Shown here: positions 3,962-62,052 of the stretch, one piece after another | How the letters are laid out: every line of letters begins with the position of its first letter | Position numbering within the stretch: position 1 is the first letter of the stretch | Source: Bispira polyomma | Lineage: Eukaryota | Direction: 5' to 3' | Length of the DNA: 64,000 nt | Assembly: GCA_965649765.1 (NCBI GenBank) | Contig: OZ287748.1 | Span: forward strand, 59,148,001-59,212,000 | The notes under the pieces: model-generated | The model's input: the letters and a program-made list of their open reading frames with translations, nothing else | Databases searched by the model: none | Told to the model about the DNA's origin: nothing | Program-made: the position numbers and the translations under genes

Positions 3962-3971
3962 GTAAGACCGG

Positions 3972-10366: not shown

Positions 10367-10866
10367 CTATTTCTGTATCGAAAGTTTAGGAAAAACCTAA
10401 AATATCAAGTTATAAAAATGTGAAAATATTCTTTGTGTATAGGATAATCAGTGAAAAAAAAAGTAAATAAAATGTTCCTATACATTAAAACAATTGTTTT
10501 TCCTTGTCTCATCCATACATAAAACCCGAAGAATGTGGCCATTTGAACTTGCATGATATTCAGAGATCTAAAGTTAAATCCTGATTGTTTTGATTTTATT
10601 AAAGCACACAAACTTTAAGTTACATTTTAAACACATCACAGTTCGGAACTCCTTAATTGAAAAGATTGATGGGATTGTTAATCCCTGCATTCAGATACTA
10701 AATGAAATGTTTTGGAATTTATTACTCCTTCACGTATTGCAAAATGTTAGAATAGGACGGCTACTTTACCGTTGCCATACAAGCAGTGACAGTTTTACAG
10801 AACTACTAAGCATATTCCATAAGTTCACATCACGCCATAAGATCTAACCGATGTCCTACTTAGTGG

Positions 10867-11497
10867 TTATAGACACTGTTTTCCACCATTTCTACTGATG
10901 ATGTACGGGCTTCTGGATTTTGTCTGTTGATCTGAGTAATTCTCGCCACTTTCATACACATTGTTGTCAAGCATATTGGGCTCTTCCGCATTGTCTGCAG
11001 TAGCATTAAACTCAACATATTGATGCTCCCCATCCTTGCTGCCGTCTGTATTATAGACGTCATTGTCGATCAGATCACTTCTACCATTGACTACTGGTAA
11101 TGCGTCTGGTTGACCCTTGTATACCACATTTTCAACAAAACCATTATCTGCGCACTGTGATCCATCATTCTCCACTGCACTGGAGCCGATTGAATATGCT
11201 GGACAAGCGGGTCTTGTTGGAATTTTATAGATTCCTGCCTTATTACATTTGGCATATTCATCTCCAGATACACCTGGATTGGACATAGTAGAATCTTGTA
11301 CATCTTCATAGTTATTGGCTGAAGGTGTGTTTGATGGTACAGGGTTTTCTTTTGGAATTTTATATATTCCTGCCTTGTTAGATTTGGCATATTCATCTCC
11401 AGACACACCAGGATTGGACATAAAGGAATCTTGTACATCTTCATAGTTATTGGCTGAAGGTATGTTTGATGGTATTTTGTTTTCTTCTGCAAGTTTT
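10867..11497 (-). CDS. Gene A exon 6, cytoplasmic Tyr-motif tail
   Basis: Acceptor ttttccaaag|a, phase 2; NNYEDV x2, EYAKxNKAGIYKIP x2, ENVVY, DNDVY, DNNVY. Confidence 0.85.
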
Positions 11498-14400
11498 CTT
11501 TGGAAAATAAAAGTTACATAGACCTAAGTATAGTGAAAGATTGGTCGTTTTTGATAAATAGAAATATGAAACCTGTTTTTGTATTGAAGCTTATTATATT
11601 TATCTACTTGTGGTATTCAAAACCTGAATCAACCTTTTCTTGACTGCGCAAGTAAAGGCAACCAACACCAGTAAAGGTCATTATCTTCGATTAAAACGAA
11701 GGCTTGAGGATGACCATTTATCAATGTTCTTGTATTGATATTTTAGTTTAATACAATGTATATTAATTAAGGTAGAACCTCTTATTATCTGAATATATTG
11801 GGAGAGTAATATTTGTATTGCATAATAGGATGTTCATGAAATAGAAAACACATTTCTGAGCGTGGAAATGAGTTTAAAAGATTGAATATTTGGGTTTGAG
11901 AAGTATGGATGATTGAGTTTTACTATACAAGGTTTCACAATTTTATAGTTAGTCTAAAGCACACCTTCTGTGTCGCCACACTACAATGATGGCAAGGACA
12001 GCAATAATAATGATCACAGTCACTGTAACAACAACTGCTATGATAGTACCTGCAACAGGGTATATATAATTAGTGTGTACTATATACTGGATCTTACAAA
12101 ACTGACTTTAAATCCTATTTCTTTAAATGAAGTGCTGATAACTTTTTATACATGTTGAGTTTTGACTTGATCATAACAAGTCTGGTGGCTGGTCTTCTAT
12201 CTACGGGTATATCTCTTTTATACCAGTAATCTGGAATGGAGGAATTACATGGGATAACATTTTACTAGCTGGCTTTACACTTTGAAGACCACAAGACCGA
12301 AGGGAATTACGGGAGGGTACTATGAATAGTTCCACAAAAATTGAAGTGACAGAAGGAGGCAAGCTCAAACGGTGGGTATGTAATTCCTCTGTTTCAGATT
12401 GATGTTGGTCAGAATTACAATCAAACTTTACCTTACAAGTATGTTTTGTTTAATTATCAATTCTATCTCACATAAATCATGTCACCTTGGAACTACATGA
12501 GATTTTAGAGCACTGAGGCCTGAATGGTAAATAGGTAGAACAAAGTGTGGGGGAAACACACACTAAGAAACTAGCAAACACAAGTGAGCTAACAGTGTTT
12601 TAATCCATTAGTCCATTTATGTACAAGTATAGTAGTAGCCAATACTGAATATAGAAGTTATATACATATATTGGCTGTAAGTCTATACACGCACAACTTA
12701 AAATCAATCAGGTCCTGTTGTCGGCAAGACAGCTGAAGCAAAAGTCTGTTGTTCTAAACGTTTTTGCATTTACCCAACCAGCAGCAGCTAAAATAGTGCC
12801 AGGTCAATACTGCCCAGCAGGTCACCCTCATCAGTGCTATCAGCCTGACCCTCACTGATTAAAAAATAAACATCAGCCTCTGAGTCTGACCTATCACCAT
12901 ATAATGTGCCCTTTTTTGCCAGAGCTGGATCGACAGGACTGTCATCACAGTCTCTTTTCTGGGTCATCAGGGTCATACTCTCAGCCATTGAGGCCATATG
13001 ACCCTCTAATTTTGACAATGTGGTGGATTGCTCCCTTTTTGTCAGGGTGGATTGCTCACCGGCCTCTCCCCCAAAATTCCTCATCAACATGAAAAAACTC
13101 ATCAACATGGGTATGTTTATCAGTCATAATTACAAACAAGTTACAACGTAAACAGGAAGTCAATATATACCCAAATGACAGTTAAAAATATCTATAAATG
13201 TTATCCAGAGAATCTGAAAATGTAGTGTATCAAAAAATCAACACAAAAGATAAAACAAGTGTGAACACCATGAAAACAGGATGCAAATGAGGCCAGCTAG
13301 TGGATTGTTATCTCATGCAGTTCCAGAGTGACATGATTTATGTGAGTTACAATAATTATTTCTGTTCTATACACCACTTGCCGCCTATTTTGAAGTCGTG
13401 GGTTCGAATGTTGGACTCTACATGTATGTGGGAAAGTTGGCAGGTGACTTTGTAAACAGCGGTGGTTTACATTTCAAAAATGGGAACCAACTATGTCTTG
13501 ACAATCTACCGTGTTCTGCTTTCATCTACAAATAAGCTACCTGTTATAATGTAATATGCAGATGGTGCAAGTGATGTTAAACCCAAACCTTAAGTTATAC
13601 CTGAAACAGCATTTTCCTTTGCTGCAGATGTTTCCAGACTGGGGTTAGGTGGTAGGGATGTGGCTGGCGTAGATGAAATGCCATCATCATTTTTCTTTGC
13701 TGCAGATGTTTCCAGACTGGGGTCAGGTGGTAGAGATGTGGCTGGTGTAGATACAATGCCATTGCCTGTGCATGAAACACGAATGCTTCCCGTCTTCCCC
13801 TCGATAACTAGTAAAGCCAGAAAGCCATCATGAAGTGAGGAGATCATAGTTGTATTGGAGAACTAAAATACTGCAACAAATAAATCCGCTGTATTTTCCT
13901 ATTCTAACAGCATTAATGGTTGTCATGTTATTGTACACCTTATGTTTAGTAGGCAGATGGTTTGGCATGTGTTTGTCATAATATGCTCGATCTGGTCAAC
14001 TGCGCATGGCAGGAAGGTAGTTGGGATAAATATTCATTAATATGTGTATATCTGCCATGCCCATGGTCTTCCCTGAATTTAACCTGTGGAATTACATTTA
14101 TGTCAATGTTTCACCTTGTGGCGTTTTGGTATTTATTTGTTTAGGTATGTTAAAAATCTTTACTCTTTAACTACACATCCTTTTATCAGATTATAGGAAC
14201 TGTTGGGGTATAATTTAAGTAGGTTATGGTCCTTATGGTTCTTGGTGGTGTTGTCTCTTTGAAAATCAAGTACAGTTATTGAGGTTCGGAAGAGCTCACA
14301 CTAACGTAGATCCTAACTTATACATAGAATACTGTATATATACATATATATATATATACAGTAGAACTTCTATTACCCAAATATAATGGGAGAGCAAGAT

Positions 14401-17400
14401 ATTGTTTGGTTAATAGCAGGTTTATAAAATAGAAGAAACATTTCTATATATAAATATATCACAATAGGAACAAGAATTTTTGAGAGTGAAAATACGCTTA
14501 TAAAATCAAATATTTTGATAACAGAAATTTGGATAATAGAGGTTCTACTTGTACATACATATTTAAATATATTGTGAAACTCACCACCTACAGGTAACAC
14601 AAAAGAGGGAGTAGGTAAACGTTTTCCTTTGTAATATAAATTGAATACCATGCCATTTTTACTGGTGTTCACTGGAACTCTGTTCTTATTCTGATGTAAG
14701 AGACCAGACTCCACTTTGTAATCCTGATCCCCTTCCTGTGCGCTCACCAGGTGCAGGATTTCATCTGATAAAGAAGGGCTGTTTATAAACACCGTCCCTG
14801 GTCCAGCTAAATAGTAACTACCCTCCTTGACTAGTTGGATTTCACACAAGAAGGTGGTCCCGGTTGTACCAACTATTTGCCCAGACTCCTCAACATATGG
14901 ATTTTGTATGTAAACCATTCCATTGGTGCCTGCTGTTTGGTGAGAGCCAGCTGGGTTTACACTGACAAACTCTATAGGATAATCTCTCACACAGGCATAG
15001 GTGATATGAAAGATTCGAGGATTCATTATTGTGGTACCATCGCTCTGTTCCTTTGAACACTGTGTGTAGATTTCCCATGGTAGAGGAGGAGTTTCCTTAT
15101 TTTTATAAAAGGTATCAACATCAAATTCAATATTGTCGAATATCAAGTCATTTCTCTGGCGAATTGCACATACATTTTCCATATTAAGCCATTGTAGATC
15201 TGCAGATTGATTGGTAGATGGCATACAATATTGTTCATAGGGATGACTTTTTAACTTTATTTCCAGAATGCTTATTAGCTTTATGTCCGAAAGATATCTG
15301 CACAGTGGTCGGCGATCTGACAGGTAATTTCTGCACAACAACCGTGTTTGAAGACCTGTTGTGATTAAAATAGGTATTTTGTTATCTTGTACTATTATAA
15401 TTTATACATGTATGAAGACATTACTTCAATTTAAGTACAATATTGTATAAACAAATGACAGACACATATTCTGTGACCTGGCGGATAACATACTCACTTG
15501 ATAACGTAGAAGACCTGAGTTTGACTCCTAGTCTATGGTGATAAGGTACTAGGTACAGACAGATGCAGGACTTCCCAAAGTCTGTGTACTGCATATAATT
15601 AGTTTTCTATGCCGGTAGGCGGTAACAAAGTAACAAAGTTATAAATTCAACCAGACAAAGACACCTTTTAGTTACTGTCAAATGCACTCATAACTAGGCA
15701 GTCAAACAGAACACCTCTAGTAACTGAATATTTAGTCACTGATTAAAAAGAAAGCAACATGCATAATTACATAAAATAATACAAAATATATCAGAATATA
15801 AATTTAATAAACGATTGCACATTTTTGGGGGTTCCAAATCCTATGTTAAACTTTTGAGGTGACAGTCGTGACATCATATTGGTACCAGAGAATTAAAATC
15901 TACCCAAAAGAAGGTCTTGTGCTTACCTGTGCCATTAGTTGCATTACAGTAACTGGTGTCATCCAGGCACATATCTAATCCTTGAACAAACACAGAGTCT
16001 GCAGAAGAACATTGTTGTTCAAAGGAGATGTTGTTTGAACATGTGTTTATGATATTACACGACTTACAAGACTGGAAATTTCCATCATTCACTTTTGCAC
16101 ATGAATAAACACACTGACCTGTTGATGAAGAAAAAGGTGTACAAATATAGTGGAACCTCTACTTAATGAAAAAAATCCAGTTAATTTTATTATGTTAATT
16201 AATTGAAGTTTTGTATTTTCTCCAATAAAGGCTCTCTCTCTCTCTCTTATTACAGCCACTCCTTGTTATAAAGATTTTACATCACTAAATGCCTATATTT
16301 CTACAGGTAGACTCCACTAAAATATTAGGGAACATTGTTACATCTCTTCTTCAGGTAATGTTGAAAACGATATAACAAACATCATTGACCTATAGTTACG
16401 AATCAAGATATTCTGTAGATAGTTAACTGTATACATTACTATAGATATGTTACAACACCACATATCAAAATTGTTTTCTTGATTATTAGCTCTCTTTTGC
16501 GAAAATGCAAAGCCCCAGCGTTTATTACAGAAATGACAGTAGATACATAAATATATGTAACGCCAAAATGATGATACATGAGAACAAAAAGAAACAGCTT
16601 TGTAACATAATGTAACGATTCGTGTATTTTTATATTTTTATAGATTCTGTATGTAGACTCCTATTTCTTATCATATCTTTTATAGTCTATTGTATTGTAC
16701 ATGAAGTCACTTTCTGCTCAACTCACAGGGTTATGTCACACACTGTATGTATAAAAGGGCAAATATACATGTCCGATTTTGCTTCCGAATCTGTCATCCG
16801 AAAACATTTAGATATAATAAAATAGAGAAGTAGGATACACCTCCGAAGTAGAATACACCTCCCAATTTGGAGCCAAATTTTCGGAATCGGTCAAAGGTTT
16901 TTTTGCGGATGATTGGCAGGAATATGAAGTAATTTCCTTGCTTTTGAGATTTTTTTTAAAGCATAAATACTAGAAAAATCAGCCAGTTTTTCGGAGGTAG
17001 TGTATCTGCAAATTCAGACGACGGAAACTGACGTCAGATGACGGATTAGGAAGGAAAATCAGACAGATATATTTGCCCCTTAAATCTATTAAGCTGCTGC
17101 ATAAAGATATTATTTTACAGAAAAAAATCAATAGTTTTCAAAATTATATTAGGTAAATAAATATACTGCCAGTAAAAGGCATCAAGTACCAGTGCATGTA
17201 TTGTAACCGAATCCCTGAAAAACTGCCCACCAAGTAAACTGTCATCAGCTCTACTTTGTCTGGGTAAACTACCAACCAGGTGAACTGGCTACCACTCAAA
17301 TTTACTAAGGACAACCATAACATTAACGACCAAAGTAAAAGTAGTATACCACCTCTTTTAATCTGTGAAGTTATGTCATAAATTTAAAAAAAAATTTTGA

Positions 17401-19405: not shown

Positions 19406-21902
19406 TACAAGTGAGGCAGTAGTCTACATGTCCAGAGTTAATTCAGTCCATGATTTTGGAGCATCAGTTGTTAAAATGTATGTTTGACTGATTAGTCATT
19501 ATGTGCTTCTCAAACTTTACACCATTAGTAAATTTAATCAAGACATGTATGTTCTTGTTATTGGTAATAAGTAAAGTCCCACTTTTTTAAAGTTCTTTTT
19601 TTTTTGGTAAAAATTAGAAAAGGCTTTTGTTTTACCATATTTTAGGCATATATTAATAGACAGGACTGTGGTCTCCCATGGCATAGTAATTTGGGAGAAT
19701 TGGTCTGGTGATCGCAAGATCCCCAGTTTGACTATCGCTGAAGCCATCTAGGTTCATTGGTCTGATAACCTCTTTGGGTAAGATGTTAACATGTCATTAC
19801 CTATTGATGATAACTGAGGCACTATCTCTTTCAGGAAACCATTGCCTTGGAGGATGGTATAGCAATAGGGCGCTACATCAATGCTTCAATAACAAGCAAA
19901 ATGTATTTTGGGAGCCTATAACAGGGCTAGGGTCAAATCCTAAAAGGATACAAAGTTATGAACTAAGGTGGCAGTTGACCTGTATGTATGATGCTGAAGC
20001 TGGTTGGCTGTACTTGCGTAGTTAAGAATAGGTTTAAGTAGCACTTTGAATATCAGATAAAGGAAGACAAATGCATGGAGTCTAAATCTGGATACTATAG
20101 AATACAATCAAATGAACCAGCTGTAGTTTTTACATCACTGTACAGTATCACTAGAACTAGGACTAAGCTCAGTCCAGGGCTGGTATTCACAGACATCATT
20201 TTTCCTAATTATTTGTCTTAGCAAAATTTAATGGCTGAAAATATTGTTTCAACTGACTTGAATGGCTGATATTAAGAAGATTCTTGAAATAGCACTTGTG
20301 AATACTTGCCCAGATCATAAATCATCTCCACCACTACCGTAAGTACAATAATACCAGCATCTCTCTCATGGTGTTTATCTTTTAGTAAAATTACTGCAGT
20401 TACAAGACTGATTCCGTGGTTGAACCTATCATAAAAATTGGTTCTGGAATTAAAAAGGTGCACTCAATGTTTTATAATATAATGTTAGCATACAATACAA
20501 TGTATAGGTTTTTACTAGTGTTTATATTCTTTGGCGCCTGTACTTTTCAAACAGAATTTGAGCTCAAATTTAGACTCCAGTCAAATAAACACTATGTGCA
20601 ATTCCTGTGTGGTGAAATAACCTATACTTGTAGTCATTCATATATAAGAAGGCTTGAAATGGAAATTTGAGCTTGAATCTGAGTTGATTTTGAATTTGAA
20701 CATGCGTTGTTATCCATTTAATGGCTAGTATTTGGACTATACTTGGATAGTGTCCCTTGTTGATGGATTTTCATCTATTCAGGCACACTCCACATGAATT
20801 AATGCATTTACAACTACTTGGTTAACTAAGAATTTATTAAAACAAAGCACTAATTCACAAGTTATAAAAATGTGGGCTAGTAGAATCTGTGAACCCTGAA
20901 ATACAATGTTTTGTACAATACAGACCAGAATATAAAATGTGTTGTATTACCCAATGCCCTTGAACATGTACACAAAAACATTATATTAATGTCTACCCTT
21001 TTGTCCCAAATCTTCAATATTTTTATGTTAATTTTGTGAAACAAAACTGATAATAAAAGTAAAACAACTCTTATGATGGGTATATTAACAGTGTATGCAT
21101 ACTGAACTCACATTGTATTGCTTATCTTCTTGGGTAATATAATTTCAAAATAATATAAACATTAACAGAAGCAAAACTTATGTTTCCAGTTGCACCAGCT
21201 ACTAAATGCATGCAACTCTGTCTAAACCAGGATTACATGATAAATGCAAAACATTACTTTTATCAGTGAAAAACTCCTGACCATAATATGTTACTTAGTT
21301 ATTTTAGTGTCTATTTCAGAAATACACCATTTTGAATCAGTGTAAAGTTAGATGTATTGGGTTTTAACGTTATCTTTGTAAAGAAAGTTAGAGCCTAGAG
21401 GTGGACAATATATAAAGCATTAGTAGGTGCTTAACTTTTGTAAAATTAGAGTTAATATATGTTCTAATACATTTTTAAAAGATGAAAACGTTGCAGTCCT
21501 TAGTGTATTTGATGCATAAGCCTAAGTGTTTTTTTATTTCTACAACTTAAAATAGTAGGACCCCCCACTGACCAATGTAAAATAGATTCTTATTCTTCTG
21601 TAGAAATATGTCCCTTATACAACTGGTATGCATGTTAAATACAGCACAGTAAACCCTTCATTAATAAACACCTCAGAATAGTGAACACCTATTTATAATG
21701 AACAAATAAAGGTCCTATTTTGCCACTAGTGAATTGTACAGTACTAAACAGTGAACACTTCCTCACATAGTGAAAATATTGGCTGACTTGGGTGAGTGGT
21801 CACTATTATTATTCAACACAAAATTTTAGGCCAACACTGGCCATGACATTACAACCAGTTGCAAATATTTTTAAGCCAAAACATTTTTTGTAACATTTAT
21901 GA

Positions 21903-22677
21903 TCAGTTATTGTAAACACTATTTTCAACCTTTTCTATGTATGCTTCATCATCCTCTGGTTTCAGTGATGCTAATTCCTTCTGTCTATCTGAAACATTCT
22001 CACCACCTTCATAAATATCATTATCCATCATCATTTCTATGACCTGTTCTTTCTTTTCTATGCCTACTGTATCGGGTTCCAGCTGAATGTATTCATGTTC
22101 CTCTGCTGTAACATTTCTGCTTAGATCCAGGTACTCATTGCCATTGTAGAGTACATTATCTATCATGCCACTTGTATGGTCACCTTTTGGTAAAACCTTT
22201 CCATTATTGTTGTCATACACAGCCTTCTCCAGGTCAATCTCTATGGCCTGTTCTTTCTGGTCTAAATCTGTTATACCAGGTTCCAACTGGATGTATTCAT
22301 ATTCTTCTGTTGTATAATTTCTGCTTAGATCCACATCATCTACCATGTCATTTGTATGGCCACATACTGGTAAAGCCCCAACACTGTTGTTGTCATACAC
22401 ACCTTTCTTAGTCATCCCATTGGTTGGTTCCTCCAGTAATTCATTGTAGATATCATTCTCCACCAGACCATCCATTTGGTTTAGTATAATCACAGATGCA
22501 ATAGTGTTATTGCCTATGGGTGTTTTATAATGTCCTGCCTTGTTTGGTTTGGCATAGTCTTTGCTGGACAGAGGTATAGGAGAATGTCCTTTCTGGTTCA
22601 TTTCAAGGTTGTCCTGGTTGTAAACTGGGTTTGCTAAGGACACAGACTTCTCATTTTCATTCAAATTCTTGCGGTGC
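21903..22677 (-). CDS. Gene B exon 6, cytoplasmic Tyr-motif tail
   Basis: NPVY, DYAKPNKAGHYKTP, ENDIY, EYIQL x2, DNVLY, DNDIY, terminal VENSVYNN*. Confidence 0.85.
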
Positions 22678-25600
22678 CTACAATGTTTTAAATTTGTGTT
22701 GATATAGTTAATTCCTTGAAATATTCAAAAGAAAAAAAAAACCTGAAGAATTTTCATGCACATTTGTGTCATGTTATTGTCCTACATATTAAATCAGAAA
22801 TGTAGAGACCATTATCTGCAGTCAAATGATATATAGTGTATGAAGAATATCGGTAGCATATCACAAGAAATGAACATAAAATCAGTTTAATTTGGACACT
22901 TTATCACATTTCTGATATGTTAGACATTTGGACATCTACACAAAAGTGTCTGCCTCATTATCTATTCAAATACAATTTCACTGGTTTGTCTAAAGATTCA
23001 TTAGAACAACATTTTTTTTTTCATTTCAAGCATTACTAAGGATTGATTTTGAATGAACTGTTGTGACTATTAAAAGGTATTTGATTTAACTCTACATTTT
23101 TGTATTCCGTGGTGCCAAAAACAAGCCTTGGAGACACCCCTTCTTTTGTTTGAAATATAAGTGCATCTCATATGCTATTGCTTTACCTCTTGTACAGACA
23201 CACCCCAGTGATGATGGCAATCACCACAAGAATGGCCACTACTGTTGTCACCACAGCTGTTGCCACAACTACAAACACAAACAATTATCCACAATATTAT
23301 TATACAGGTATGATTAAGGGGGTACGGCTGATAGTTTTGGTACTGATGGAAAGGTTGGGCTCCAAAAAACTATTAATCTGATGATATTTTTTAAAAGTCT
23401 GATGGCTTGATATTTACAAATATAAGCGTCATTGTTGACGAAAATCACCATCGCCGACTTCTTGTAGTATGATGTATCAAAGCCAACTTCATATTTACAT
23501 GTTCAGCACACTCAACATAATATTTTATACATTTACGACAGTCAATCTTTTACCCCTCAAACTCGTGCCTGTGGGAAGGCAACGGCTCGTATATATCCAT
23601 ATTTCTCAATGACTTCTGACAAAGTACATGTAACGAAAAACCAAAAATATGTATTGAAATGGCCAGTTAAGTTTACTTGAAAAAAAAAACACCTTTGAGG
23701 TTAATTGTTGTACAGCTTAGAAAAGACTGTTATAGTTATTTCAAGTGAATTATGTTTAGTATTATTTAACATCAATTATGCCAACAAATGTGACGGATCA
23801 CTCCAGTTATATTTAACTTAAATATCTCATTCTAACTTGTGAAGACAATAATGATTATATTGTTTAATTTTATCTATAACAATTGTACAATTCTACAGGT
23901 TTTACATATGATAATGTGCTAACATAAAATTATAATTTTCTCTGCTTTGACAAGCAAAACGATAGAAAATGTATTTTACTTATCTCTCAGTGACCCAACA
24001 TTTTAATATTTAAATGGTCAGTTAATTTAACTGAAAAATGTAGAAAACTTAAAAAAGATAAAACACCTGATGAAGATGCTTTAGTATTCTCAGTTTGACC
24101 CTGTTGCTGATCAAATTGCCTATCCTCAGTTACTGAGTTGTTTATGGTGCTGCTCATAGGTGGCATATCAGTTGATGGACTTGTTGACGACAATGACGTT
24201 TTTTGCTGGCTTTCCTCAGTTACCAAGTCATTCGCAGTGCTGCTTATAGGTGGCATATCGGTAGCTGGACTTGTTAAGGGCAATTGATCTCTATCACCAT
24301 AGGAAATATTTATATATCCTGTATAACCTTCCAGTACTGATAAAAACAAAGATTAAAATTCATTAGAATATGCATGTAAATGAGAAAATCAGATAATTTA
24401 CCGTATGCAGAATAAATAAAGCTTAATTTTATATTTCCATTTGACAAGAGTTTATGAGCATTCATAGTACTATCATATTACTATATATAATATCGAAGAG
24501 ACACATATTTACTAATACAAAACATGGATATCTTGATGTCAATGTATTGTAATTTTCTTTTCATTAAGTTATATATTTTTTTCTATTAAAAATTCTGTTC
24601 TAAAAACAACACAATGCATGGAAATATGAATAGACTAGTATAATAAATCATGTATACAATTTTATGGATTGTATTTCTTTGTTTAAAAATACCACTTGGA
24701 AAGTTGACAAGCTCTAAAACTGTATAAAGCTTTCTCATTGTAATATTGACACCATAATATTGAAATATTGAGTAGCTAGTGAATCACTCACCACCAATTG
24801 GCAGTAGAAAGGATCCTGTAAATTCGTTTTGCCCAATGTAGTAAAGGTTGAACATTTTTGCACTAAATGCTGTTGTAACCATAATTCGTTTTCTGTAGTT
24901 CACAAGACGTGGCTCTATGGTGTAACTCTCTGTCTCAGGGAATGTTGCATTTATGACAAGAATATCATCTGAATCAGACTCCCGACCACTAAAAGCCGTT
25001 CCTGGACCACCAAAATAATATCTACCTCCCTGCTGAAGATCTATCTGGCCCAGGTGCTTTATATGTACACTGTATTTTCGATTGATATCCTCATTTCTTT
25101 TCCTTCTTTGATGCAATGGATTTGACTTTTCTACATTATACTGCACATACACCATTCCTTGAGACTCAGACTCTGCAGTGGTAGTGGCATCATTTATACT
25201 GTAGAATTGTATTTCGTAATTTTTCACACAGGCAAAAGTAATATGAAAAATTCTGGGGTAAGAGCCTTTAACTGGTCCTTTTTCACAAATGTCTTGACCT
25301 TGACTATTATAGGCATCACTGGTATCAACATCAGTGGTATCGTTACTATCTTCGTTAGAACCATCTCTACTATCACCTGTATCTGCACTACCAGTTGCTT
25401 CACCTGTCTCTTCAGAACTGTCTGTTTTCTCTTTTGTGTCTGACTTACTAGTTTTCACTTGGTATTCCCCATCAACAGGAACTTCAGGACTTTCAGAATA
25501 ATCTTCACCACCCACTTCCTCAATTTCTGTAGAATGCATTTTCGGACACTTATTGTAAATATCCCATGGTGCAACATAATCTTCCTGCTCATTAAAAGTG

Positions 25601-43011: not shown

Positions 43012-43169
43012 CCCTTGATAAGTCACAGTATGTGCACACCAGGGACGGATCCACGGACGGTTCCATCCTGCATTGGTACACTGGTGGTAGGTGTGTGCTC
43101 TATATGTAAAAGGAAACACACATGTTCCATTTGTCTCCGAACGCACACTCTCTATGATTGGGCAGCTTG
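43012..43169 (-). CDS. Gene C fibronectin type II domain exon
   Basis: GTCVFPFTYRAHTYHQCT...RPWCAHT matches the FN2 signature C.FPF.Y....Y..CT....WC; phase 1-0 as in gene D. Confidence 0.8.
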
Positions 43170-45072: not shown

Positions 45073-45350
45073 NNNNNNNNNNNNNNNNNNNNNNNNNNNN
45101 NNNNNNNNNNNNNNNNNNNNNNNNNNNNNNNNNNNNNNNNNNNNNNNNNNNNNNNNNNNNNNNNNNNNNNNNNNNNNNNNNNNNNNNNNNNNNNNNNNNN
45201 NNNNNNNNNNNNNNNNNNNNNNNNNNNNNNNNNNNNNNNNNNNNNNNNNNNNNNNNNNNNNNNNNNNNNNNNNNNNNNNNNNNNNNNNNNNNNNNNNNNN
45301 NNNNNNNNNNNNNNNNNNNNNNNNNNNNNNNNNNNNNNNNNNNNNNNNNN
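45073..45350. other. Assembly gap (N run)
   Basis: Run of n characters. Confidence 1.
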
Positions 45351-49400: not shown

Positions 49401-49971
49401 TTAATTATTGTAGATATCATTATCTACCATGTCCACAACGCTCTCCCTTGTGACTGCACTATAGGCACCTGACATACCATTGCTCTCATAGAGATCATTC
49501 TCCTGCAATTCTACCTCCTCAGCAGCTTTATCTGTAACACAAACATCAGCATCACATCGTTCTGTCTTTGCTATGGTGTTGGCATCAGTTGGCTTCTCAG
49601 GTTCAAAACACAATGGAGATGCACTTTCTGCATTGTTAGGTCTACCTTCTTCAGTTGTTGGGCCAGTTTGGTAGACTTTATTATCAACCATACCATTGAT
49701 GTCTCCTTGGTCAGCAATAGCACTGTCATTATCAATATCATTGTCTAGCAAATCTTGTTCAATATTAAGAACATTAAAATGATTGCCTCTTGGTTCTCTT
49801 GATTTCGGGATAGTGCAGATTCCTGTTTTGTTAGGCACAGCATATTCAACAGTGTCTTCTGTTGCTATATATGCAGTTTCTGAATTGGTAGCTTGACTCA
49901 TATCTTCGGAGTTGTATACTGGGTTTGTATGCGATACAGTAGCTGGTTTGTCATTTACAGGTTTGTTCCTT
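49401..49971 (-). CDS. Gene D cytoplasmic tail exon
   Basis: NPVY, EYAVPNKTG, DNKVY, ENDLY, terminal MVDNDIYNN*. Confidence 0.85.
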
Positions 49972-52900
49972 CTGCAAACATGTAAAGGCTATAATTATCT
50001 GGAAATATGAGCTTTTGTGCCATTTTATAATTAACTTTGAATACATTTATGCCATGATATAAATAGTAACATATTCTACTGATTAAATAGTCAATTTAAA
50101 TAATCTTATAGATACTATATTGGTATTATCGATTTATTACTTTAGAAAGTTATTGTTAAATATTATGTGTACTTGATCAACGGAGTTTTTCTGTTGGTGA
50201 GGGTTAATGCAAGAGTGTTTAATATTTTTAGGATGAGTTGACTAAAACTTCTTACCGTCTGATGAAGCACAACACTCCTATTACAGTAAAGACACAGATG
50301 GCAATCAGAGTCACACCCACTGCAATGGCTATAATTGTACCTGGGACAGAATTTATGTTTTAAAGACCAAGAAGCATTAAAATAGCATGAAAATATTTTT
50401 AACAAAAAAAAAACAACCTAAATCACAAATGATTGATTACTTCCCCATCAATGAAGTCTAATTTCACCCTTGGATGACTGAAGATCAAATTATTTAGTAA
50501 TGTTACCCTCGACTTTAAATCTCCCACAGGTTACTGAATGTTACTGAAATTAATGGCTTATAACATTTTTAATTAAGCCTGGGCTTTCTTTTAACATGTT
50601 TTTCTCGGCCATATTTATCAGTCGTTATTTATTATTACCAAAGGTTTTCTTTCAACATATTTCCCTCAGATCAGATCAGACGTCGGCTGACGTTTGTTAC
50701 ACCATCAGAATTTATCAGTTAGGCACCCAAAAAATCGAGAGGTCTGTCGGATTTTTAAACAAAAATGGAGATTTAGTACATATCGGATGAAAAGAAGTGC
50801 TACATCGGCTAATGTCAGATCGGATAGGATGTTAATAAATCAGCCGAAGTGTGAATCTGCTGAAAAGAAGCCATGGACCTCCTTTCAGCATGTTTTTCTT
50901 GGCCGACATTTTCGGTCATTACATAATACTACCAAGTGCTTCCATTAAACATATTTCAGATCAGATCAGACATTGGCCGGCATCTGTTACACCAACAGAA
51001 TTTAACGGTCAGGAAGCGAAAAAATTGGCAAGCCGGTCCAATTTTTTTAGCAAAAAAAAAAAAATTTAATAATAAAATATTTAGTACATATTGGATGAAA
51101 GGAAGCACTACATTGGCCAACGTCGGATTGGCTCGGATGTTAAAAAATCGGCCCATTGAAAGGAAGCCCAGGCTAAGTCATGATTTTTATTCAATCACAT
51201 TTATTGTGACAAAGTACCAAAAACATAAAAATACATTCCTACCTGAAGACATCTTGTTTTTGCTGTCTATATTTGTCTGTTGCTGATTGCCAGAATTTGC
51301 ATTTTGTGTAGAAGTGGAAGATATGTCCATTGTTGGGGTACCACTGGTACCTGTATTTGCTCCTGTACTCATAATAGATGACTCTGTAGCACTAGTTGGT
51401 GCAGACACAGTTGATCCCATATTTAATGTAGTGGACTGTATTTCGGAAGAACTGGTTACTGAAGATGTTGATGATACTTGCTGGTCAGTAAACTCTGTGG
51501 ATATTTCGGTGGTTGTCTCTACTGTTTGTTTTGATGTTGAAGCATGTGGAGAACTTGAGGATGACATAGTTGTGGTCACTGTGGGTACTCCTTCACCACA
51601 CTTTATTTGCAATGAGCCTACTTCATTTTCTACAACTTTAATACAGAGAAAAAAAAGGTTCACACATTGTTTAACTGGTGTGTGATAAGTACTTCTCTAG
51701 GATATTTTTTGTTTGCACATATGTGTCCAAAACAATATAAATAGGTTTCAGTATATATGTGAATAACATGTGTGCCATTTTTTTTGCTTCTCCTATAATT
51801 ATTTTTCATATTGTAATGTACTTACCCCCGACTGGTAATATAAAATGTACTGCTACATTGCCATCATTTTCATCATTGGTGTACTGTACACTGAAGCTTT
51901 CTTCATCCATACCAGTATTGATGTGAATCCTTTGTAAGTTACTGATTACACCAGGTAATATATGATATTCAGTATCGCCATTAATGGCTTTTATTATAAT
52001 TTGGGAATTTCTATCAGCAGTTTCAAACAATGTTCCTGGCCCTCCAATATACAAATTACTAATCCCCAAAGATGTAATGGTGCATGTACCGTTTAACATT
52101 GTTATCTCATTACTTGGGCTATCATAAACACATGTGCTCCAGTTTTGAAATAATCCACTATGGCTTTCAATATACACCATGTCTGCCATTTGTACAGTTG
52201 AATCATTTTGCATTGAAATCACTTCCAACTTAGAAGGAGTCTTGCAAATATACGTCATATGGAAGATACGTGGATAATCTTCTTGTAAAGACGTTGTAGC
52301 TGTTCTATCAGAATCATCATTGTTGCTGCTTATTTCCCATTTTATTGAATATTTATTGGCATAGACTTTGTCAAAATCAAATGCGAATTCGCCAAACATT
52401 AAATCAGGTCTTTGTCGTATTGCTAATACACGTGAAGTATTCAGAGTTTCCAGGTATTCTGTAGAATTGTATGTACAGTTGTTAATGTAGTACATAGAAT
52501 CCTGCAGAACTAGTTCAATAACACTGAGCCTTCTAATTTGGTTGGAGTATTTACACAGTGGTTGAAGGTCTGACAGGTAGGTTTTGCAGAGAAGTCTTGA
52601 CTTCAGACCTGAAATTTAGGTTTTAGTAATAATTATTTTGAGCAAAACTAAAAAAAAGTAAACAGAATATAATACAATATTTCTCTTTACACTTCAGCTT
52701 CATACAAATGTTATCCACTAAGTAGAATACACATCATTAAGTTATGCGTTAAGTATGGTTCGGATAAATGAACTGCTTATCTGAATAATTATAATAGTTT
52801 TTTTAGTGAGACAAACAACAGCAGTCCACAGGGTAACCTCAGAAAGGGGTGACAGGGAAGAAGATGATAAATAATGAAAACAGCATTAGCATCTTTGGGC

Positions 52901-55900
52901 ATTTATTTCTACACACATACTTTAACATATAAGACTAAAAGGTTAGTATTGTTAAGTTAACTATATTTTGTACAAGATAAGGTGACCAGTAAGATTAAGG
53001 TCAACCTTACAGCATTAAATTAACCTTTACATAAGAATGTAAAAACAGGAGGTGACTTTAAGGTCACTAACACAGTTACAATTGACTGGATTTATCTGGA
53101 ATGATTTAAGGTCACCTTAAGTTTTAACTTTAGAACTTTAAAAAGTTAGATGAAGAGTTTTAACTTTAAGGTTAACTTTGAGGAGTGACTTAAGGCCACC
53201 TTAAGTTAAACTTTTTTTACTTTACATTAGTTACCCGAAGAGTTCTAACTTTAAGTTTAACTTAAAATTAAGTAGGGGAACTTAAAGCCACCTACATATT
53301 ATAAAGCACTACTAATAGATTTAAGGTTGACTTAAGGTCACCTTAAGAAATTTTACCTGTGCAGTTTAAGTGAAGGCAACCTTAAGGGCTACCTTCCAAG
53401 GTAAACTGGCATTGATAGTTTAAGATAAGTTTTAGTAGTTACTATATATTACCATTACATGTAAAACTAACTATATACAAAGCCTAAACGCCATGCTAGT
53501 ACTATTTATGCATGATATTTTGTAGGGAACGTGCGACAGAGGCTGACACGTTAGGGGTGGACTGCAGGTATGCTCATAATGCCGAAGAACACCATCCCCC
53601 ATGGGCCCAAGATAAAGACACAATGATTTTTCTTAACACTCGCCCTACTTTATAGGCGGTAAGGGGTACCAGTTTTCGATTTACTTTATACATAAACACT
53701 GGGGATTCCTGGGTGTTCTTATTTTTGGCCAATATTGACCTGAGAGCTGTGACTGGGCACAAAAGAGGGTTTCTAAGGGCAGGTAATTGCACCATGTGAT
53801 ATTGATTATACTTTTGTAATTTTTTGCCCAACGCAAAACAACATGAACACCAGGAGATCCCCATACAAAATCTTGACAAGTTAAGTGCCTTTCAGGATTG
53901 AAGGACAAGCGGAAAAACCCAAGAAGGCCGTTAAGAATAAGGCCTGAAACACATAAGAATGTGGAAATAAATTTAACTGCTGCATAATAGCAGTAAGAAT
54001 GGGTAAGGTGATAATTCCCTTTAACCTGGGGGAATAGGGAGTTGACATGGACAAAGATCTGAAAAAAAGTCTTTTCTGGAGATGAGACAGCAGCCCTACT
54101 GGAACAGACCACAATTGAAAATGGTGCTTTGCGGCTGACACATAGTTCTGTATTGAACGGGGTTTTAATCGCTGCTGAGCTAGATACTCTAAAAATTGTA
54201 GCATAAACTCTAGGGAGGTTACCTCTTCAACTCCTAAGAACAAAGCAAACGCCAGAAACCATTTAATGCAATTTTCATATGCTTGCTGGGTTCTTTCAGT
54301 TAAGGCATTTTCAAGCCTGGTAGAAGCTGATCTTAGTAGGAGTTTTTGCAAAGGGGCACCTGAAAAGTACATCAAAATTTCATATTCAGTGCAAATTTTT
54401 CTTTGCTCACTGATCACCACTTTTTATGTTTTACTTCATTATGAACTTTTTGGTCTATATACCCAGGGATGTACATGCGAGACAGATAATCTGCTTGGAC
54501 ATTCTTCACCCCTGCAATATGCACAATTTCCAGTTTTACATTGAATTTTGCAGTTTCAAGCCAAATACAACGAGCCAACATGCCCAGAATTTTGTCATAG
54601 AATCGCTTTGAATTCAAGCCAGCTACTACCGCCCCATTGTCGCACTATAACTTTATGGTGCAGTTCTGGAAGCATTTTCCCCAAACTCTCATACCTAGAA
54701 CTAGGATGTTCCACATTTCAAAATGAACTATGGTCATGTCCGTCAGTTTATCTGTCTGGAGGCAAGCTGCATACACATTTTCTGACTACACTGCCCCATT
54801 GCCCATCAGAGACGCGTCCACATATAGATCATAGGTGGGCTCGTTTTTCAGGTGCATTGCTACCACTCGATTGAATGAACTGAGGAATTTTTGTAAACCA
54901 GCTCAGGTCTGCCTTAAATTCTCTTGTGAGAATAATGTTTCTATTCGGGTAAGTTTCTCTTAGCAGTCCCAACATGCGGTTCAAAAACAACCTGGCAGGG
55001 GCCACACATCTGGTTATATAGAGCAATTTGCCCAAAATAGACTGCAAGTCTTTTCAAGTATACCTATGCACACCACCTCGTGGGAGGCGGGAAATACTTT
55101 TTTCGGGTTAATGGGCAGACCCAGGTGTTCGATTAATGTGTACAGTTGCTGAAATGATTCCGTTGCTTTTTCACTGGTTTCTATGGCAACCAGATTGTCT
55201 ATGTAATTCCATATCCGAAATTTTTTGGTCCACATTATTCGACGCAAACTGTTTGTGAGTCTTTCACAAATGGCCGTGCCATGCTTATAGCCCATCATTA
55301 CGGCTAAGTCAATGTATGTGTCTTGATCCCATTTGAGACCTGTGTATTTATAGTCAGCTGGATCTATCCGCAAATTTCTAAACGCACGAGATAGATCCAG
55401 CTTGTATAGCAACGCGGTAGGAACTTTTTTGTCAATTCATTTAACCAGCATGTCTACTGTGGGTAATGTTAAAACAAATTCCTGTCCATCATAACTACTG
55501 TCGGTCACCAAATTGTTCACCGAGGTACTATCATGTGGCCATGAAAAATCCACAATCAGTCGCCTGGTTTTGTCATGCTTTGGTCGTGTCATTACAGGAG
55601 AACAATGAAGATTTTTGTAAGAATTTGTGCTAAACAGACCTGCAATGGCTTCATGAAGTCTTTTTTGTTATGAATTATTTGTCTACACTTTGGGGGTGTT
55701 GGAGGGCACTGTCGTAATTCTTAACATTGTTATTGAATTCAAAATGTCCCCCTTCATGTCCAATGGAAACTCAAATTCCAAGTAATCACACAGCTTGCTA
55801 TACCCATCCCTTTTTAATACAGGGGCCGTGGTGGCCTAGTGGTTAGCAAGCATTGTGCTTCACAATCACTGGTCTCTCACCTCTGGCCGACGTGAGTTCG

Positions 55901-58900
55901 AATCCCATCGATGCCTATGTGAGAAAGGTGGTAGTTCCTTACTGTGGGCCGCTGGTTTCAGTGCAGAACCTTGACCGACTGTATGCAGTGTTTCCTCCGG
56001 CGTTTCCAACTACCCGTCCCAATATAACCTACTTAAAGGTACTAGAGTGGACGTTAAATATTCAAATTCAATTCAAACTCTTTTTAAAATATTCCTCCAA
56101 GCTGTCAGATTAAGCTCAGAAGGGACAGGTATTCTAGCGCCCAAGTAATTTGGTTTATGTTATCGAGATACTGCCTCATGTGCTTTGACAGCCCATTCTT
56201 CTAATGTGTCAAATTTAATTGGGTTTCTATTGTTTCACAAACTTGAAGCCAGAGGAAAGACGCAATTAAAACCAAAGTGGTGAACACATTCATCCATATC
56301 ATTGTTACCTTTGTCGTCACCCGAGTTAAGCCTAATTAGGTTCTTTTTGTCACACACCTAAGTGTCAACCTGGGGAGGGCCCTCGTTGAGAACTGCATTT
56401 GCATTTCTGTCAATTAACACCTTTGGGTTGAGAGGAACGGGTTCGCCCTGATAATTGATTATGTGTTTTTATAGAGGGGAGCATTTCTCTTGTTGCTTTC
56501 ACAACCACTTTTTACTCTAGTTTGTCCAACTGTTATGTTGGCATGAAGTGTGTTTGAAGCAGGAACAATGGACTTAGTTGACAGGTCCCCTTCACCTTTT
56601 TGCTCCCTGGAAGCAAACCAAAAATTCCTGTCCATCATAACTACCGTCCTTCACCAAACTGTTCACTGAGGTACTATCATGTGGCTATGAAAGATCGACA
56701 ATCAGTCGCCTGGTTTTGTCATGCTTTGGTCGTGTCATTACAGGAGAACAATGAAGATTTTTGTAAGGATTTGTGCTAAACGGACCTGCAATGGCTTTAT
56801 GAAGTCTTTTCTGTTATGAATTATTTGTCTACACTTTGGGGGTGTTGGAGGGCACTGTCGTAATTCTTAACATTGTTATTGAATTCAAAATGTCCCCCTT
56901 TCATGTCCAACGGAAACTCAAATTCCAAGTAATCGCACAGCTTGTTATCCCCATACCTTTTTAAAAGAGGGGCCGCGGTGGCCTAGTGGTTAGCAAGCAT
57001 TGCGCTTCACAATCACTGGTCTCTCATCTCTGGGCTGCGCGAGTTCGAATCCCGTCGATGCCTATGTGGGAAAGGTGATAGTTCCTTACTGTGGGCCACT
57101 GGTTTCAGTGCATAACCTTGACCGACTGTATGCAGTGTTTCCTCCAGCGTTTCCAACTACCCGTCCCAATATAACGTACTAAAAGGTACTAGAGTGGATG
57201 TTAAATATCCAAATTCAATTCAAACCCTTTTTAAAATATTCCTCCAAGCTGTCAGATTAAGCTCAGAAGGGACAGGTATTCTAGCGCCCAAATAATTTGG
57301 TTTATCCTAACGAGTTACTGCCTCATTCTTCTAATGTGACAAATTTAATTGGGTTTCTATTGTTTCACAAACTTGAAGCCAAAGGAAAGACGCAATTAAA
57401 ACCAAAGTGGTGAACACATTCATCCATATCATTGTTACCTTTGTCGTCGCCCGAGTTAAGCCTAATTAGGTTCTTTTTGTCACACACATAAGTGTCAACC
57501 TGGGGAGGGCCCTCGTTGAGAACTGCATCAATTAACACCTTTGGGTTGAGAGGAATGAGTTTGCCCTGATAATTGATTGTGTTTTTTATAGAGGGGAGCA
57601 TTCCTCTTGTTGCTTTCACAACCACTTTTTACTCTAGTTTGTCCAACCTTCATGTTGGCACAAAGTGTGTTTAAAGCAGAAACAATGGCCTGAGTTGGCA
57701 GGTCCCATTCTCCTTTTTGCTCCCTGGAAGCAAACCTGCCAACTTGTTTACCACTTGTTTACTATTGTTTTCTCTTTTTACAGAATGTTTTGAGGTTTTT
57801 CGCGGGTTTTTACCTATGTACACAGTTGGTTTGCCGCCTTTTTGCAAGGGCGGGAACCCCCCAGCTTGGGGGTCCCCCTCCTCACACCCCTCACCATTGG
57901 TACAAATATGCACCTTTACACACTGAAACTTTACATTTTTACACATACATATATCAGACACAACAGATTTTTAAAATACACTCATTTCCTTAAAACTACC
58001 TGCAATTCTATTTCTCTTAAAACCACTGTTCCAGAACACTCTACTAAAAACTGGCTGTCATTTATAAGAGGCCCCTGGGTTTCCCTAGTCTTACTACTTC
58101 CTTTACAATGAATCTCTCTAGGATTTAGGATTTTCTTATCCTTGCTAAAGAACTTTCCACATGCATGCTTCAGTAACATGCTACAAAACACGTGGTCTTC
58201 TGTTTGGCTACAAGAACCCCTATTAAAAGCATTGCACATGACTGTATTGGTTTTTGATTTGATTTTTTGAGAAGCACTAGTACCACTGGCATTATCATGT
58301 TGGGCAACGTCCTTAAGGGTATGTTGTGTGAGCCTAGACCTTAACTCGTGTATTTCCCCTAAGCTTTTCCAGTCGGCCTTTCCCTTCTCCATTTCCAATA
58401 TTATCTGACAGTGGGCACTCTTGACTGTATACCAAGATGTCTCAAGACCGTCCCTCATTAACTGCATGCCATATTTGAGCATGTTGTCCCTGATCTTACT
58501 ATCTTTTTCCTCATGAATACACCCCAAATATTCCTGAAACCACATCAGTGGTGTGAGTTCCTCATAGGAGGGTTGCTTCTTACCAAATATATTGTAACAC
58601 ATTTCATGGGGCCACGTTATTAAATGTTTCACAGTGTGCTCTGAGGTTCTTTGCAGGCCAGACTTTAGTTCCTTACCGTTTTCAGGGGAAAACAACACCT
58701 GGGATCTGTACTTATGCAGTCTCTTGTCCACTTGGGCCTGGATACTTTCAGTAGTCTTTAGGAACTTTTGACTTGGCAAGATGGCATCATCGAGCCCGTC
58801 GTAATCAGTGTTGTACTTAGAGTCATAGTCAGTCGCCCTTCTACGTCGCCCCCGGCGAGCTCTTGATTCTGATTGTTCATCACTATCTGATTGTGCTTCT

Positions 58901-61900
58901 GGGACATACCCATGTCGCACAGGTGAGCTATATTACACTTCCTGCTCCTTGAGGCTTTTACTCAATTTACAATAGTCCTGATCTCTTTTTACTTCACTCA
59001 TCTCACCTTCCAGTCTATTTAATTTATCCAGAATTAAATCCAACTTTGAATGTTCTGCCCCTCAGCCCCGCCTACAAGTACCAGCACCTCTCTCGTCACC
59101 TGGTCTCCAAGCAGCGAACCAGCTGGGGAAGATGCATCCTGGAAAGGAGTAGGTCGAGGAACTTGAAGCTGACACTGCCGCCCTACCGGGCGCTCATGAG
59201 TAGTCCCACACTTCTTGCACATTGCCATTTTTGCAGGCATTTTAATATTCATTCTGAAATAATCTTAATTGTCCTTTAGTTTGCTGTAAAATATAAGATC
59301 ATGGATGCTGCAGGTTGTGCTTGTAAAGAACAATTAAAAGCTTTTATAATTTTTGGATTTTGATTTTAATTGAATGAATATGTAAGTTTTACATCCGTTA
59401 ATGATAAGCTTGAAAAGCCAAAACAAGCATAAATTGCAGAATCCAATTTAAGGTGACACTCTCTCCCAGTACACTTTAATGACACCTATCAACCCCTTTA
59501 AAAGGGTATTTATACTCCCAGCCAGGCTCCGCCCATCAATGGACTGAGCCACTTTTACTCAAAGGGGAGAGGGGTGATGGGTTACATTTTAAGGTAATGA
59601 GGTGACCTCCTCGGACTGAACCGAAGTGCTTCGCAGCTTCCACACTTTGCATGCTTGATTTAATATAGGTGTGTGTCTTGGATTCCATCAGCCAACACTA
59701 AATTAGTCATCACTCGATTTAAAAGAAATAATATTAATTTGTAGAATATGTAAGTGATTTTTTATAATGCTTTAATATCCATGTTTGCTTTACAATACAC
59801 TTTAAAATTTGGAGATAAATACAAACCAAGCAATTTCAAATTTTCTATGTATAATTAGCCTATTGAATGTCATGTTGCACTTAAGTAGGTTATACACAAG
59901 ATGATTTGCAGTTAGTAATACTTTAAATTAGTAATACATATCTTTAGTGATTTTCTCTGATATTTCTAATATGGAGGTCACTTGAGACAAAACCTTTCAC
60001 TCTCACCTATAAATTGCGCAACAGTTGTCGACGATTGCAGGACTGCCGCAGATGGTGATATTTTTCTGCAGCCTCCTTTATTATTGACATAGCTATCTAA
60101 ATCATGTATTACTTAAAAAAACTCTATGATTTCTATGAAATGATTTTGGTTTATTTGTAATAACAAATGGTGGTACCTTACCAGTGACTATGGCTGTAAG
60201 TGATTGTACTCTATGTTTACATTTTTGATCAAAAATTATATTTATCTCTGCATAGCTATGTAAAACCATATATTACTCACTAGTATCCGACACCATACAA
60301 TAACTGTCCTCATCAACAATACAACCTCTTATGGCATTGTAAACCTGTCCCTGTGGACAGGATTCTTCCTGTAATGTGTCTTTTTCACACAATACTTTGG
60401 TATTGCAAGATTTACAGGAGCGGTAAGAGCCATATTTCATATTGGCGCATGACATCACACATTCATCTTTAAGAATAAAAAACGAGTTAAAATTAGCAAA
60501 AGCTTGTGTAAGAAAAGAGTCACTTATATTATGTGAGCTTTACACATTTTTCCAATTGTTACTAAATCATATTCCGCAAAATCGAATAATCAAGCATTTA
60601 TAAAATATAGATTTCTTTAATACAACATTAAAGAATAAGACTAGGTAATAAATTTTATAATATTAGGTAAAGTAAATTCTCTGTTTGTATATATGTAGGG
60701 ATCGAAAATTCGTGAAAGATTTTATGCCAAACAATCAATAGTATATATACCCTCTTGGTAACATACTGCTTGAGTCTCTGGAGGTTGACACTGAGATCCA
60801 TTACACTGTTGATTATCTAAAACGATATAAGACAGAAATAAGATATGTTTTAAACTTGGTATTGTGATGATTCCAAGGTTTTCAAGTTGAAAAGCAAGGA
60901 CTAGTATTTGTTGTAGCTAAAATGTCGTTAGATTTTAGAACTAATTCAAAATATGTATATGCTTTGACAGAAAAATCAGACAGAATTTCAAATTCTGTTG
61001 AAAGAAATTAAAATTCGAACATCTGTAAACAGATTTTGAAATTCTGTTGAAAATAATAACTTTCTGACAAATTGACCATAATATATGCTATGTGATTGCT
61101 AATACCAATACAATGTTTACTATGTTTAAAGGAAGCTGAGTCCACAAAAAGTTGATGACACTCGAAAATAAGAACCTCATGCAACAGTTTAAAACTTTAT
61201 AACCTCGACAATTAAGCACTGAATATACATATAATACACAGAAGTAAATGTCCACTGTGAGACGTTGTATAGCCCAACTAGCTGATTAATCTGTCTAATC
61301 TTGATCACTTACCACACTTGTCAGGACAAAACCTCCCAGTCAGGGTGCCATCTGGGTTTATAACAGGTGCTCCACATTCACCCCATTTTTTATCCTGTAA
61401 AGAATTTGAATTTGGATATTTAACGTCCACTCTAGTACCTGTTTAGGTTATATTGGGACGGTCTATCCTGTAAAGATATGACCTTTTGTGTGTCAAATAA
61501 TTACCTTGTGGCAAATCGTTTTGTGTGCATGCAGAAGTATACAAAATGATATATACATTCAAATAAATTTTCAGCAAAGATACATCTTCACTTTTTTGCT
61601 TTAGAAGTCGAGTTATTTTTCTTGCTTTAATTTTAGCATAAAGGTTGTATTGCAAAGTTTGTAACATATTAAATTAACATTGGTGACGAAATTGTATTTC
61701 TAACTGGACATATATGTAATTAAAAAAAAAAAATACACTATCTTGTTAACTTTTAACTGTGTGTCTTTGATCTAACAATTGTCAATGACCAGTAAATAAA
61801 TAACTAGATATACTTCATTGCCACTACTGAAATTGAACTGTGTAATCATTTTACATTTACACTTCTACATAATCAAACCAACCTTGTCAATGTTAGATGT

Positions 61901-62052
61901 TACACCACAGGTAATATTGTGGTAACACTTGGTGTATAGTTCTTTATTATACTGGAATGGGAACACACACATCCCCTCTCCCTGTATTTGATGTAATTCA
62001 GCTGTAGCAGGATGATGATAAAGAGGATATGCCTTCAAATCAGGACAGACAC
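49401..62052 (-). CDS. Gene D (5' partial): FN2-Cys-rich-ChtBD2-novel domain-stalk-TM-Tyr-motif tail receptor (>=778 aa)
   Basis: Exons 62052-61883, 61394-61313, 60816-60751, 60466-60281, 52608-51826, 51635-51243, 50340-50256, 49971-49401 all splice in frame. The signal exon is presumably beyond the window. Confidence 0.85.
50256..50340 (-). CDS. Gene D TM exon TIIAIAVGVTLIAICVFTVIGVLCFI-RR
   Basis: 85 nt, phase 1-2. Confidence 0.85.
50574..51176. mobile_element. Head-to-tail MITE dimer in gene D intron
   Basis: Outer TIRs agcctgggctttcttt / aaaggaagcccaggct; two ~295-bp similar units. Confidence 0.7.
51243..51635 (-). CDS. Gene D Ser/Thr mucin-like stalk exon
   Basis: 393 nt, phase 1-1. 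Confidence 0.8.
51826..52608 (-). CDS. Gene D central ectodomain exon
   Basis: 783 nt, phase 1-1; SRLLCKTYLSDLQPLCKY...IRQRPDLMF...YPRIFHMTYIC...GGPGTLF...FILPVG. Confidence 0.85.
55822..56077 (+). mobile_element. tRNA-derived SINE inserted in the DIRS RT region
   Basis: A box TGGCCTAGTGG, B box GTTCGAATCCC, (aattc)n tail, flanking ctttttaa duplication. Confidence 0.8.
56969..57224 (+). mobile_element. Second copy of the same SINE (created by the tandem duplication)
   Basis: Same sequence and same flanks as 55822-56077. Confidence 0.8.
60281..60466 (-). CDS. Gene D ChtBD2-like exon
   Basis: ECVMSCANMKYGSYRSCKSCNTKVLC...SCPQGQVYNAIRGC...SYC; 186 nt, phase 1-1. Confidence 0.8.
60751..60816 (-). 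CDS. Gene D small Cys-rich exon DNQQCNGSQCQPPETQAVCYQE
   Basis: 66 nt, phase 1-1, good acceptor; positional equivalent of C exon 41645-41563. Confidence 0.6.
61313..61394 (-). CDS. Gene D exon: end of FN2 and start of Cys-rich module (DKKWGECGAPVINPDGTLTGRFCPDKC)
   Basis: Phase 0-1, donor G|GTAAGT; homologous to C exon 42123-42021. Confidence 0.75.
61402..61462 (-). mobile_element. 3' fragment of the same SINE family
   Basis: Reverse complement of ccgtcccaatataaccta...ggtactagagtggacgttaaatatccaaattcaaattc. Confidence 0.7.
61883..62052 (-). CDS. Gene D FN2 exon
   Basis: GMCVFPFQYNKELYTKC...CGVTSNIDK, continued by DKKWGEC in the next exon. Confidence 0.8.

Follow-up and report, generated by a model that had tools for sequence, protein, structure and literature searches.

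Precedents for clustered, lineage-restricted receptors come from the GRC (PTC1) and PTC2 clusters of Biomphalaria (PMC4361660, PMC7494358) and from the FcoR genes of Botryllus (PMC11507803). In the Biomphalaria clusters, single-pass genes restricted to a lineage stand in tandem and have large, beta-rich ectodomains and long tails, while the Botryllus genes are clustered kinase-less type I receptors with several tyrosine motifs and tails that differ between members. Here we describe a receptor cluster that extends into a window of 64,000 nucleotides from Bispira polyomma (contig OZ287748.1, positions 59,148,001 to 59,212,000 of the forward strand). A sequence-only reading of this window had proposed an array of four receptors, genes A, B, C and D, that would link chitin binding to phosphotyrosine signalling. 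We consider it on balance probable that these genes are part of a tandemly arranged family of recognition receptors, type I and kinase-less, that belongs to an annelid lineage and lies in a cluster evolving by birth and death.

As in the GRC/PTC2 systems, single-pass genes restricted to a lineage make up the cluster, with gains and losses of genes, large ectodomains predicted to be beta-rich, long tails, low identity between paralogs and a lophotrochozoan host. The Biomphalaria genes differ in having their own domains (FN3, chitinase-like or none) and in that the diversity of their alleles and a resistance phenotype define them; the comparison is one of cluster organisation, with no tested homology. 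The Botryllus receptors, also without tested homology, carry Ig-type ectodomains and canonical ITIM (immunoreceptor tyrosine-based inhibitory) or hemITAM (hemi-immunoreceptor tyrosine-based activation) motifs, whereas here we found SUEL-like and CUB-like heads and mainly NPxY/NxxY motifs. Little is known about non-self recognition receptors in annelids, and the cluster supplies candidates that are conserved across species and have testable docking motifs. We found no described animal receptor with this architecture in the literature searched (most subscription journals were outside its scope) or among 1.84 billion protein representatives, as the sequence-only reading had supposed.

Exon plan and evolution of the cluster

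In a six-frame reading, all four window genes lie on the minus strand and have a common exon run, made up of CBM14-type (171-192 nt), domain (716-1029 nt), serine/threonine-rich (S/T) stalk and transmembrane (TM; 82-85 nt) exons and a single tail exon. These exons all have AG/GT ends, the head exons are in phase 1-1, and the TM exon goes from phase 1 to 2 in 4/4 genes, confirming the proposal of same-strand paralogs with matching exons and phases. We infer that the head exons join the TM and tail exons into one gene. The ectodomains are as divergent as had been noted, the domain exons of A, B and D sharing 29-44% identity with one another and 14-16% with that of C.

The array is larger than the four genes first proposed. 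Using a domain-exon profile, we found nine copies on C1 (59.16-59.31 Mb, about 150 kb), where the window is the lower end, and one on C7; the further copies on C1 are named E-I. Of these ten copies, B, D and G alone look intact. Stops or frameshifts occur in F, H, I and the C7 copy, and the signal-exon donor of E is weak. Searched against the 1.84 billion protein representatives, the same profile gave 13 matches, of which 12 are plausible exon-sized open reading frames and none of the ten looked up bears a name. Most of the 13 come from one assembly (ENA ERZ22147071), that of a second animal, here called species 2, in which a single contig carries, across ~520 kb, at least seven copies that all point the same way. 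The species-2 copies keep the order CBM14, domain, stalk, TM and tail as well as the splice sites and phases, and one has an FN2 exon.

In a tree of the copies, C, H and I each form cross-species clades (support 0.88-0.97), and D, E and F represent a recent expansion. The ratio of nonsynonymous to synonymous substitution rates (dN/dS) is 0.22-0.36 in orthologous domain and tail exons between species, with dS near saturation, and ~0.5 among D/E/F. Judged by these comparisons, the family is under purifying selection between species and is an old scaffold evolving by birth and death; this cross-species pattern is what chiefly supports reading the exons as real genes. Copy number, lesions, cross-species clades and tail motifs thus support the earlier proposal of a lineage-specific, kinase-less type I family with tyrosine-motif tails and birth-and-death evolution.

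Large ectodomain and tyrosine tails

We searched the receptor models against Pfam, PDB and structures exon by exon. The large exon (~260 aa) is predicted to fold as a degenerate SUEL/rhamnose-lectin-like (SUEL/RBL) domain, a weak match, plus a CUB-like domain. Pfam gave no match on the domain exon or the tails, Gal_Lectin (PF02140) gave none in 16 members, the PDB sequence search with the large exon gave none, and ESM Atlas, searched by features and by structure, gave no usable match. A homologous-protein search came back blank as well, but its length window and word index keep this from counting as absence. The exon had been described simply as a ~250-aa domain exon. It has no Pfam family, and no relatives turned up in annotated proteomes; its SUEL-like and CUB-like nature had been missed, as had the FN2 (PF00040) exons of C and D. 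FN2 exons score 40.1 bits in C, 27 in D and 27.1 in E, all above the Pfam cut-off of 22.2 bits, and were looked for but not found in A or B.

The hallmarks of SUEL/RBL domains are eight Cys, a PDPCPG loop and sugar-binding Glu/Lys (PMC2430599), a set that the large exon does not show: its alignment conserves only 3-4 Cys and has no PDPCPG loop, and the resemblance rests on a weak structural score. EVA-1/C21orf63 and latrophilin, like the fold predicted here, have a SUEL-like domain on a membrane receptor, probably without sugar binding (PMC2430599), but differ in these same features and in lacking the CUB-like domain that comes next here. The best fold match of the large exon is the CUB domain of Kremen (kringle-WSC-CUB-TM), at 13% identity. 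Unlike Kremen, the receptors gave no Pfam match to kringle or WSC on any exon scanned, are multi-copy and have a long multi-Tyr tail. On the sequence evidence, the family is neither Kremen nor EVA-1 but an undescribed and real one.

Tails of the main class combine a juxtamembrane NP[VI]Y with a Y-x-K-x-x-K-x-G-[IV]-Y block and with repeats of [DE]Nx[IVL]Y, a motif that recurs at the tail's end. These motifs are kept in both species while the spacers vary, in agreement with the claim that the tails retain the same short tyrosine motifs (NPxY and acidic NxxY, with A lacking NPVY). In A, B and D, [DE]Nx[IVL]Y is present 3-4 times where shuffles give an expectation of 0.02-0.08, and in main-class tails 2-4 times against 0.01-0.08; the motif was defined from these same data and recurs in species-2 tails. 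The main class contains no canonical immunoreceptor tyrosine-based activation motif (ITAM), ITIM or immunoreceptor tyrosine-based switch motif (ITSM).

The first reading missed that tails have moved between paralogs. The domain exons of E, F and the C7 copy are about 70-80% identical to that of D (79-81% for E and F), yet their tails differ (YENM, YMN, EYAxL, TEYATL). A third tail type, with three YEN and YxxL-x11-YxxL, occurs on L043, a C-type gene in species 2. Because these heads carry tails unlike those of related copies, tails appear to have been exchanged between paralogs at least twice, in whichever direction. The TEYATL of the E tail is ITSM-like, and YxxL counts across tails are no higher than in shuffles. 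Such head/tail exchange resembles that of paired immune receptors.

Proposed function and alternatives

PTB domains recognise NPxY/NxxY motifs, which drive endocytosis; acidic-[IVL]-Y sites suit Src-family kinases, and YxN binds Grb2. In a recognition receptor of this kind, the core would comprise the degenerate SUEL-like and CUB-like domain, an O-glycosylated stalk, one TM helix and an acidic tyrosine-motif tail, with FN2 and CBM14-fold modules as optional N-terminal additions. The stalk would raise the multi-module head, which may bind a glycoprotein, protein or microbial surface ligand that differs among paralogs. Clustering of receptors could then lead a Src/Abl-type cytoplasmic kinase to phosphorylate the acidic [IVL]Y sites, and PTB and SH2 adaptors docking on NPxY/NxxY and YxN would promote uptake and signalling. 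Duplication, loss and tail exchange would retune the receptor set, as in innate-immune or self/non-self clusters.

If the CBM14 heads bound chitin, the family would instead couple chitin reception in an invertebrate to phosphotyrosine signalling: a sensor or anchor that, in an annelid setting, attaches to the chitin in chaetae, tube, gut matrix or fungi and signals or internalises through its tail. We regard this as unlikely, and the sequence evidence is now against assuming it. The small Cys-rich module is, by profile and cysteine pattern, a member of the CBM14 fold: it has six core Cys plus an extra pair, as in CBM14/ChtBD2 proteins (peritrophins, the CHIT1 chitin-binding domain, Avr4, EHEP), agrees with the six-Cys pattern and profile of PF01607, is kept in both species, and as an alignment profile matches EHEP (1.6e-8), Avr4 (6.5e-7), CHIT1 (1.9e-4) and a squid beak chitin-binding protein in PDB. 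Unlike in those proteins, the module here sits on a signalling TM protein, and the key Trp is absent. W465 is the Trp most important for chitin binding in human CHIT1 (PMC5459812) and aligns with a Trp in Avr4; at this position, after the penultimate Cys, an aromatic residue is found in 0/11 aligned copies, and the P-x-G-L pocket, likewise needed in CHIT1, is mostly lost. Chitin-binding residues do vary across CBM14, but Aplysia EHEP, the best PDB sequence match of the receptor module, and Der p 23 both share the fold and bind no chitin (PMC10619976). Surface display could supply avidity. Against chitin binding, the Pfam CBM_14 cut-off, which at least 53 genomic sites exceed, is passed by C (E 3e-6) and the G1 exon but not by A (0.011), B (3.6e-4) and D (1.3e-3), and for I-type members of both species a CBM14 exon was searched for within reach and not found. 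Because of the missing Trp, the mostly lost pocket, the non-binding EHEP and the members in which no CBM14 exon was found, chitin as the ligand is doubtful, so that of the proposed chitin-binding receptor the fold membership stands. The mollusc setting suggested with it also fares poorly: erythrocruorin linker genes are present in the genome and molluscan haemocyanin had no match (in a search without positive control), making the host likely an annelid and roles in shell or radula therefore unlikely. Even less likely is a combined case, in which CBM14-bearing animal signalling receptors truly sense chitin or a related glycan and also form an annelid paired-receptor system, with near-identical heads joined to NxxY, ITSM-like and ITAM-like tails by exon exchange.

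The SUEL-like and CUB-like domains may alternatively bind protein, the genes being co-receptors in development, the nervous system or gamete recognition, or else endocytic receptors, used in the manner of Kremen or EVA-1, that clear cargo through NPxY. This is consistent with Kremen CUB as best fold match and with the view that SUEL/RBL domains on receptors, which often have lost the residues for sugar binding, interact with proteins (PMC2430599). The NPxY motif is juxtamembrane and conserved, and several sub-lineages persist across species. However, the family turns over rapidly, includes many pseudogenes and has no relatives that could be detected in annotated proteomes, whereas Kremen and EVA-1 are conserved low-copy genes, and we consider such roles rather improbable. 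That the array is mostly decaying, with a few working genes of minor role among pseudogenes, is very unlikely: the small number of intact-looking copies (three of ten) and the dN/dS of ~0.5 among D/E/F would fit, but purifying selection between species and the conservation of motifs and splice phases argue against it. Recognition receptors evolving by birth and death remain our preferred interpretation.

Individual gene models and neighbourhood

All exons of the four genes given here are on the minus strand. Gene D, earlier taken to be 5' partial, looks complete on its sequence. Its tail exon (49401-49971) encodes 189 aa with NPVY and an intact end motif, and is preceded by a TM exon (50256-50340, 85 nt), a stalk exon (51243-51635, 44% S/T), a SUEL-like and CUB-like domain exon (51826-52608, 783 nt; AlphaFold predicted local distance difference test score 80) and a CBM14-type exon (60281-60466) below the Pfam cut-off. 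Two FN2 exons (61883-62052 and 61313-61394) are in frame with this CBM14 exon, and a candidate signal exon lies at L011:7418, 6.4 kb past the window end; this probable exon of 58 nt has the same length and ending as in F and the C7 copy. The long intron of D contains a decayed tyrosine-recombinase (DIRS-like) retrotransposon (53577-58932, minus strand) that is not part of the receptor, and its first intron a long interspersed nuclear element (LINE) reverse-transcriptase fragment (62623-64000, minus strand). Decayed DIRS-like elements also occur elsewhere in the cluster (L016:5182-8097; L017:4829-9718), and similar reverse-transcriptase/recombinase elements adjoin species-2 copies.

Genes A and B had both been called complete. 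For B, the frame is open from CBM14 to the stop, and the signal exon (32233-32302) is a modest candidate. Its other exons are the CBM14-type exon (26140-26322; donor at 26140 or 26149, either in frame), the domain exon (24792-25820) with a ~75-aa acidic insertion within the SUEL-like part, the stalk exon (24067-24336, 31% S/T), the TM exon (23187-23268, 82 nt) and the tail exon (21903-22677), which encodes 257 aa with 15 Tyr, NPVY, four [DE]Nx[IVL]Y and an intact end motif. A LINE reverse-transcriptase fragment (27750-28136, minus strand) lies in its first intron. For A, which is not fully complete, the reading frame is open but ends at 10867, with the conserved end motif of the family lying at 10860-10892 in a different frame. 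The A tail exon (10867-11497) encodes 209 aa with 13 Tyr, has a 135-nt internal duplication and lacks NPVY; upstream are the TM exon (11965-12049, 85 nt), a stalk exon (13601-13807) that begins with the last CUB-like strand and has a 78-nt repeat, the SUEL-like and CUB-like domain exon (14585-15355, 771 nt) and the CBM14-type exon (15927-16118, below the Pfam cut-off). We searched for a well-supported signal exon for A and found none; a hydrophobic exon without a good donor site (20106-20199) is a candidate only. An open reading frame at 12791-13123 was rejected as an A exon, being a dispersed repeat with at least 40 copies; the repeat (12700-13100, ~80% identity between copies) lies in the stalk-TM intron.

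Gene C is disrupted, as had been proposed, with at least two frameshifts, one near the 5' end of the domain exon (39414-40129, 716 nt) and one in the tail exon (37125-37736), whose frame stops at 37211 and leaves the conserved end motif (37125-37157) out of frame. Both frameshifts are present with zero differences in contigs from DNA runs, probably of the source animal, which rules out an assembly error. No second allele was seen in the C exons in these runs, which are of one study. The gene further has a signal-peptide exon with a good donor (43976-44060), FN2 exons at about 43012-43169 and at 42021-42123 (Pfam fn2), a small Cys/Trp exon (41563-41645, 83 nt) with a possible third lesion, a CBM14 exon above the Pfam cut-off (40839-41009), a stalk exon (38724-38984) and a TM exon (38142-38223, 82 nt). 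Very high-copy short repeats lie in its introns (38500-38700 and 42850-42910; depth thousands-fold over the flanks). Directly downstream of the tail is a 126-codon stop-free frame (36487-36864, minus strand), single-copy in the genome and without Pfam match. An assembly gap (45073-45350) lies between the D stop (49401) and the start of the C signal exon (44060); it is intergenic and touches no modelled exon, so no gene model depends on it.

Beyond the window, extra small Cys/Trp exons after FN2 are common to C and G, and copy G has two CBM14 exons (L018:442-1249, minus strand). A Thr-rich tandem repeat of ~72 nt, in which the frame changes, enlarges the stalk exon of copy F (L013:5276-7191, minus strand). 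Right past copy I on the same strand lies gene J, with a CUB exon, a Thr-rich stalk and a TM exon (L021:8600-9419, L022:424-858, minus strand). Gene K (L023:7705-9519, L024:3635-9239, minus strand) has SUEL-like and CUB-like exons by eye, a TM exon and a Tyr-poor tail, with no Pfam match; profile comparison of the large exon with J and K was not significant. At the other end, Ser/Thr-rich exons of an adjoining plus-strand gene occupy window positions 2-448 and 3465-3962.

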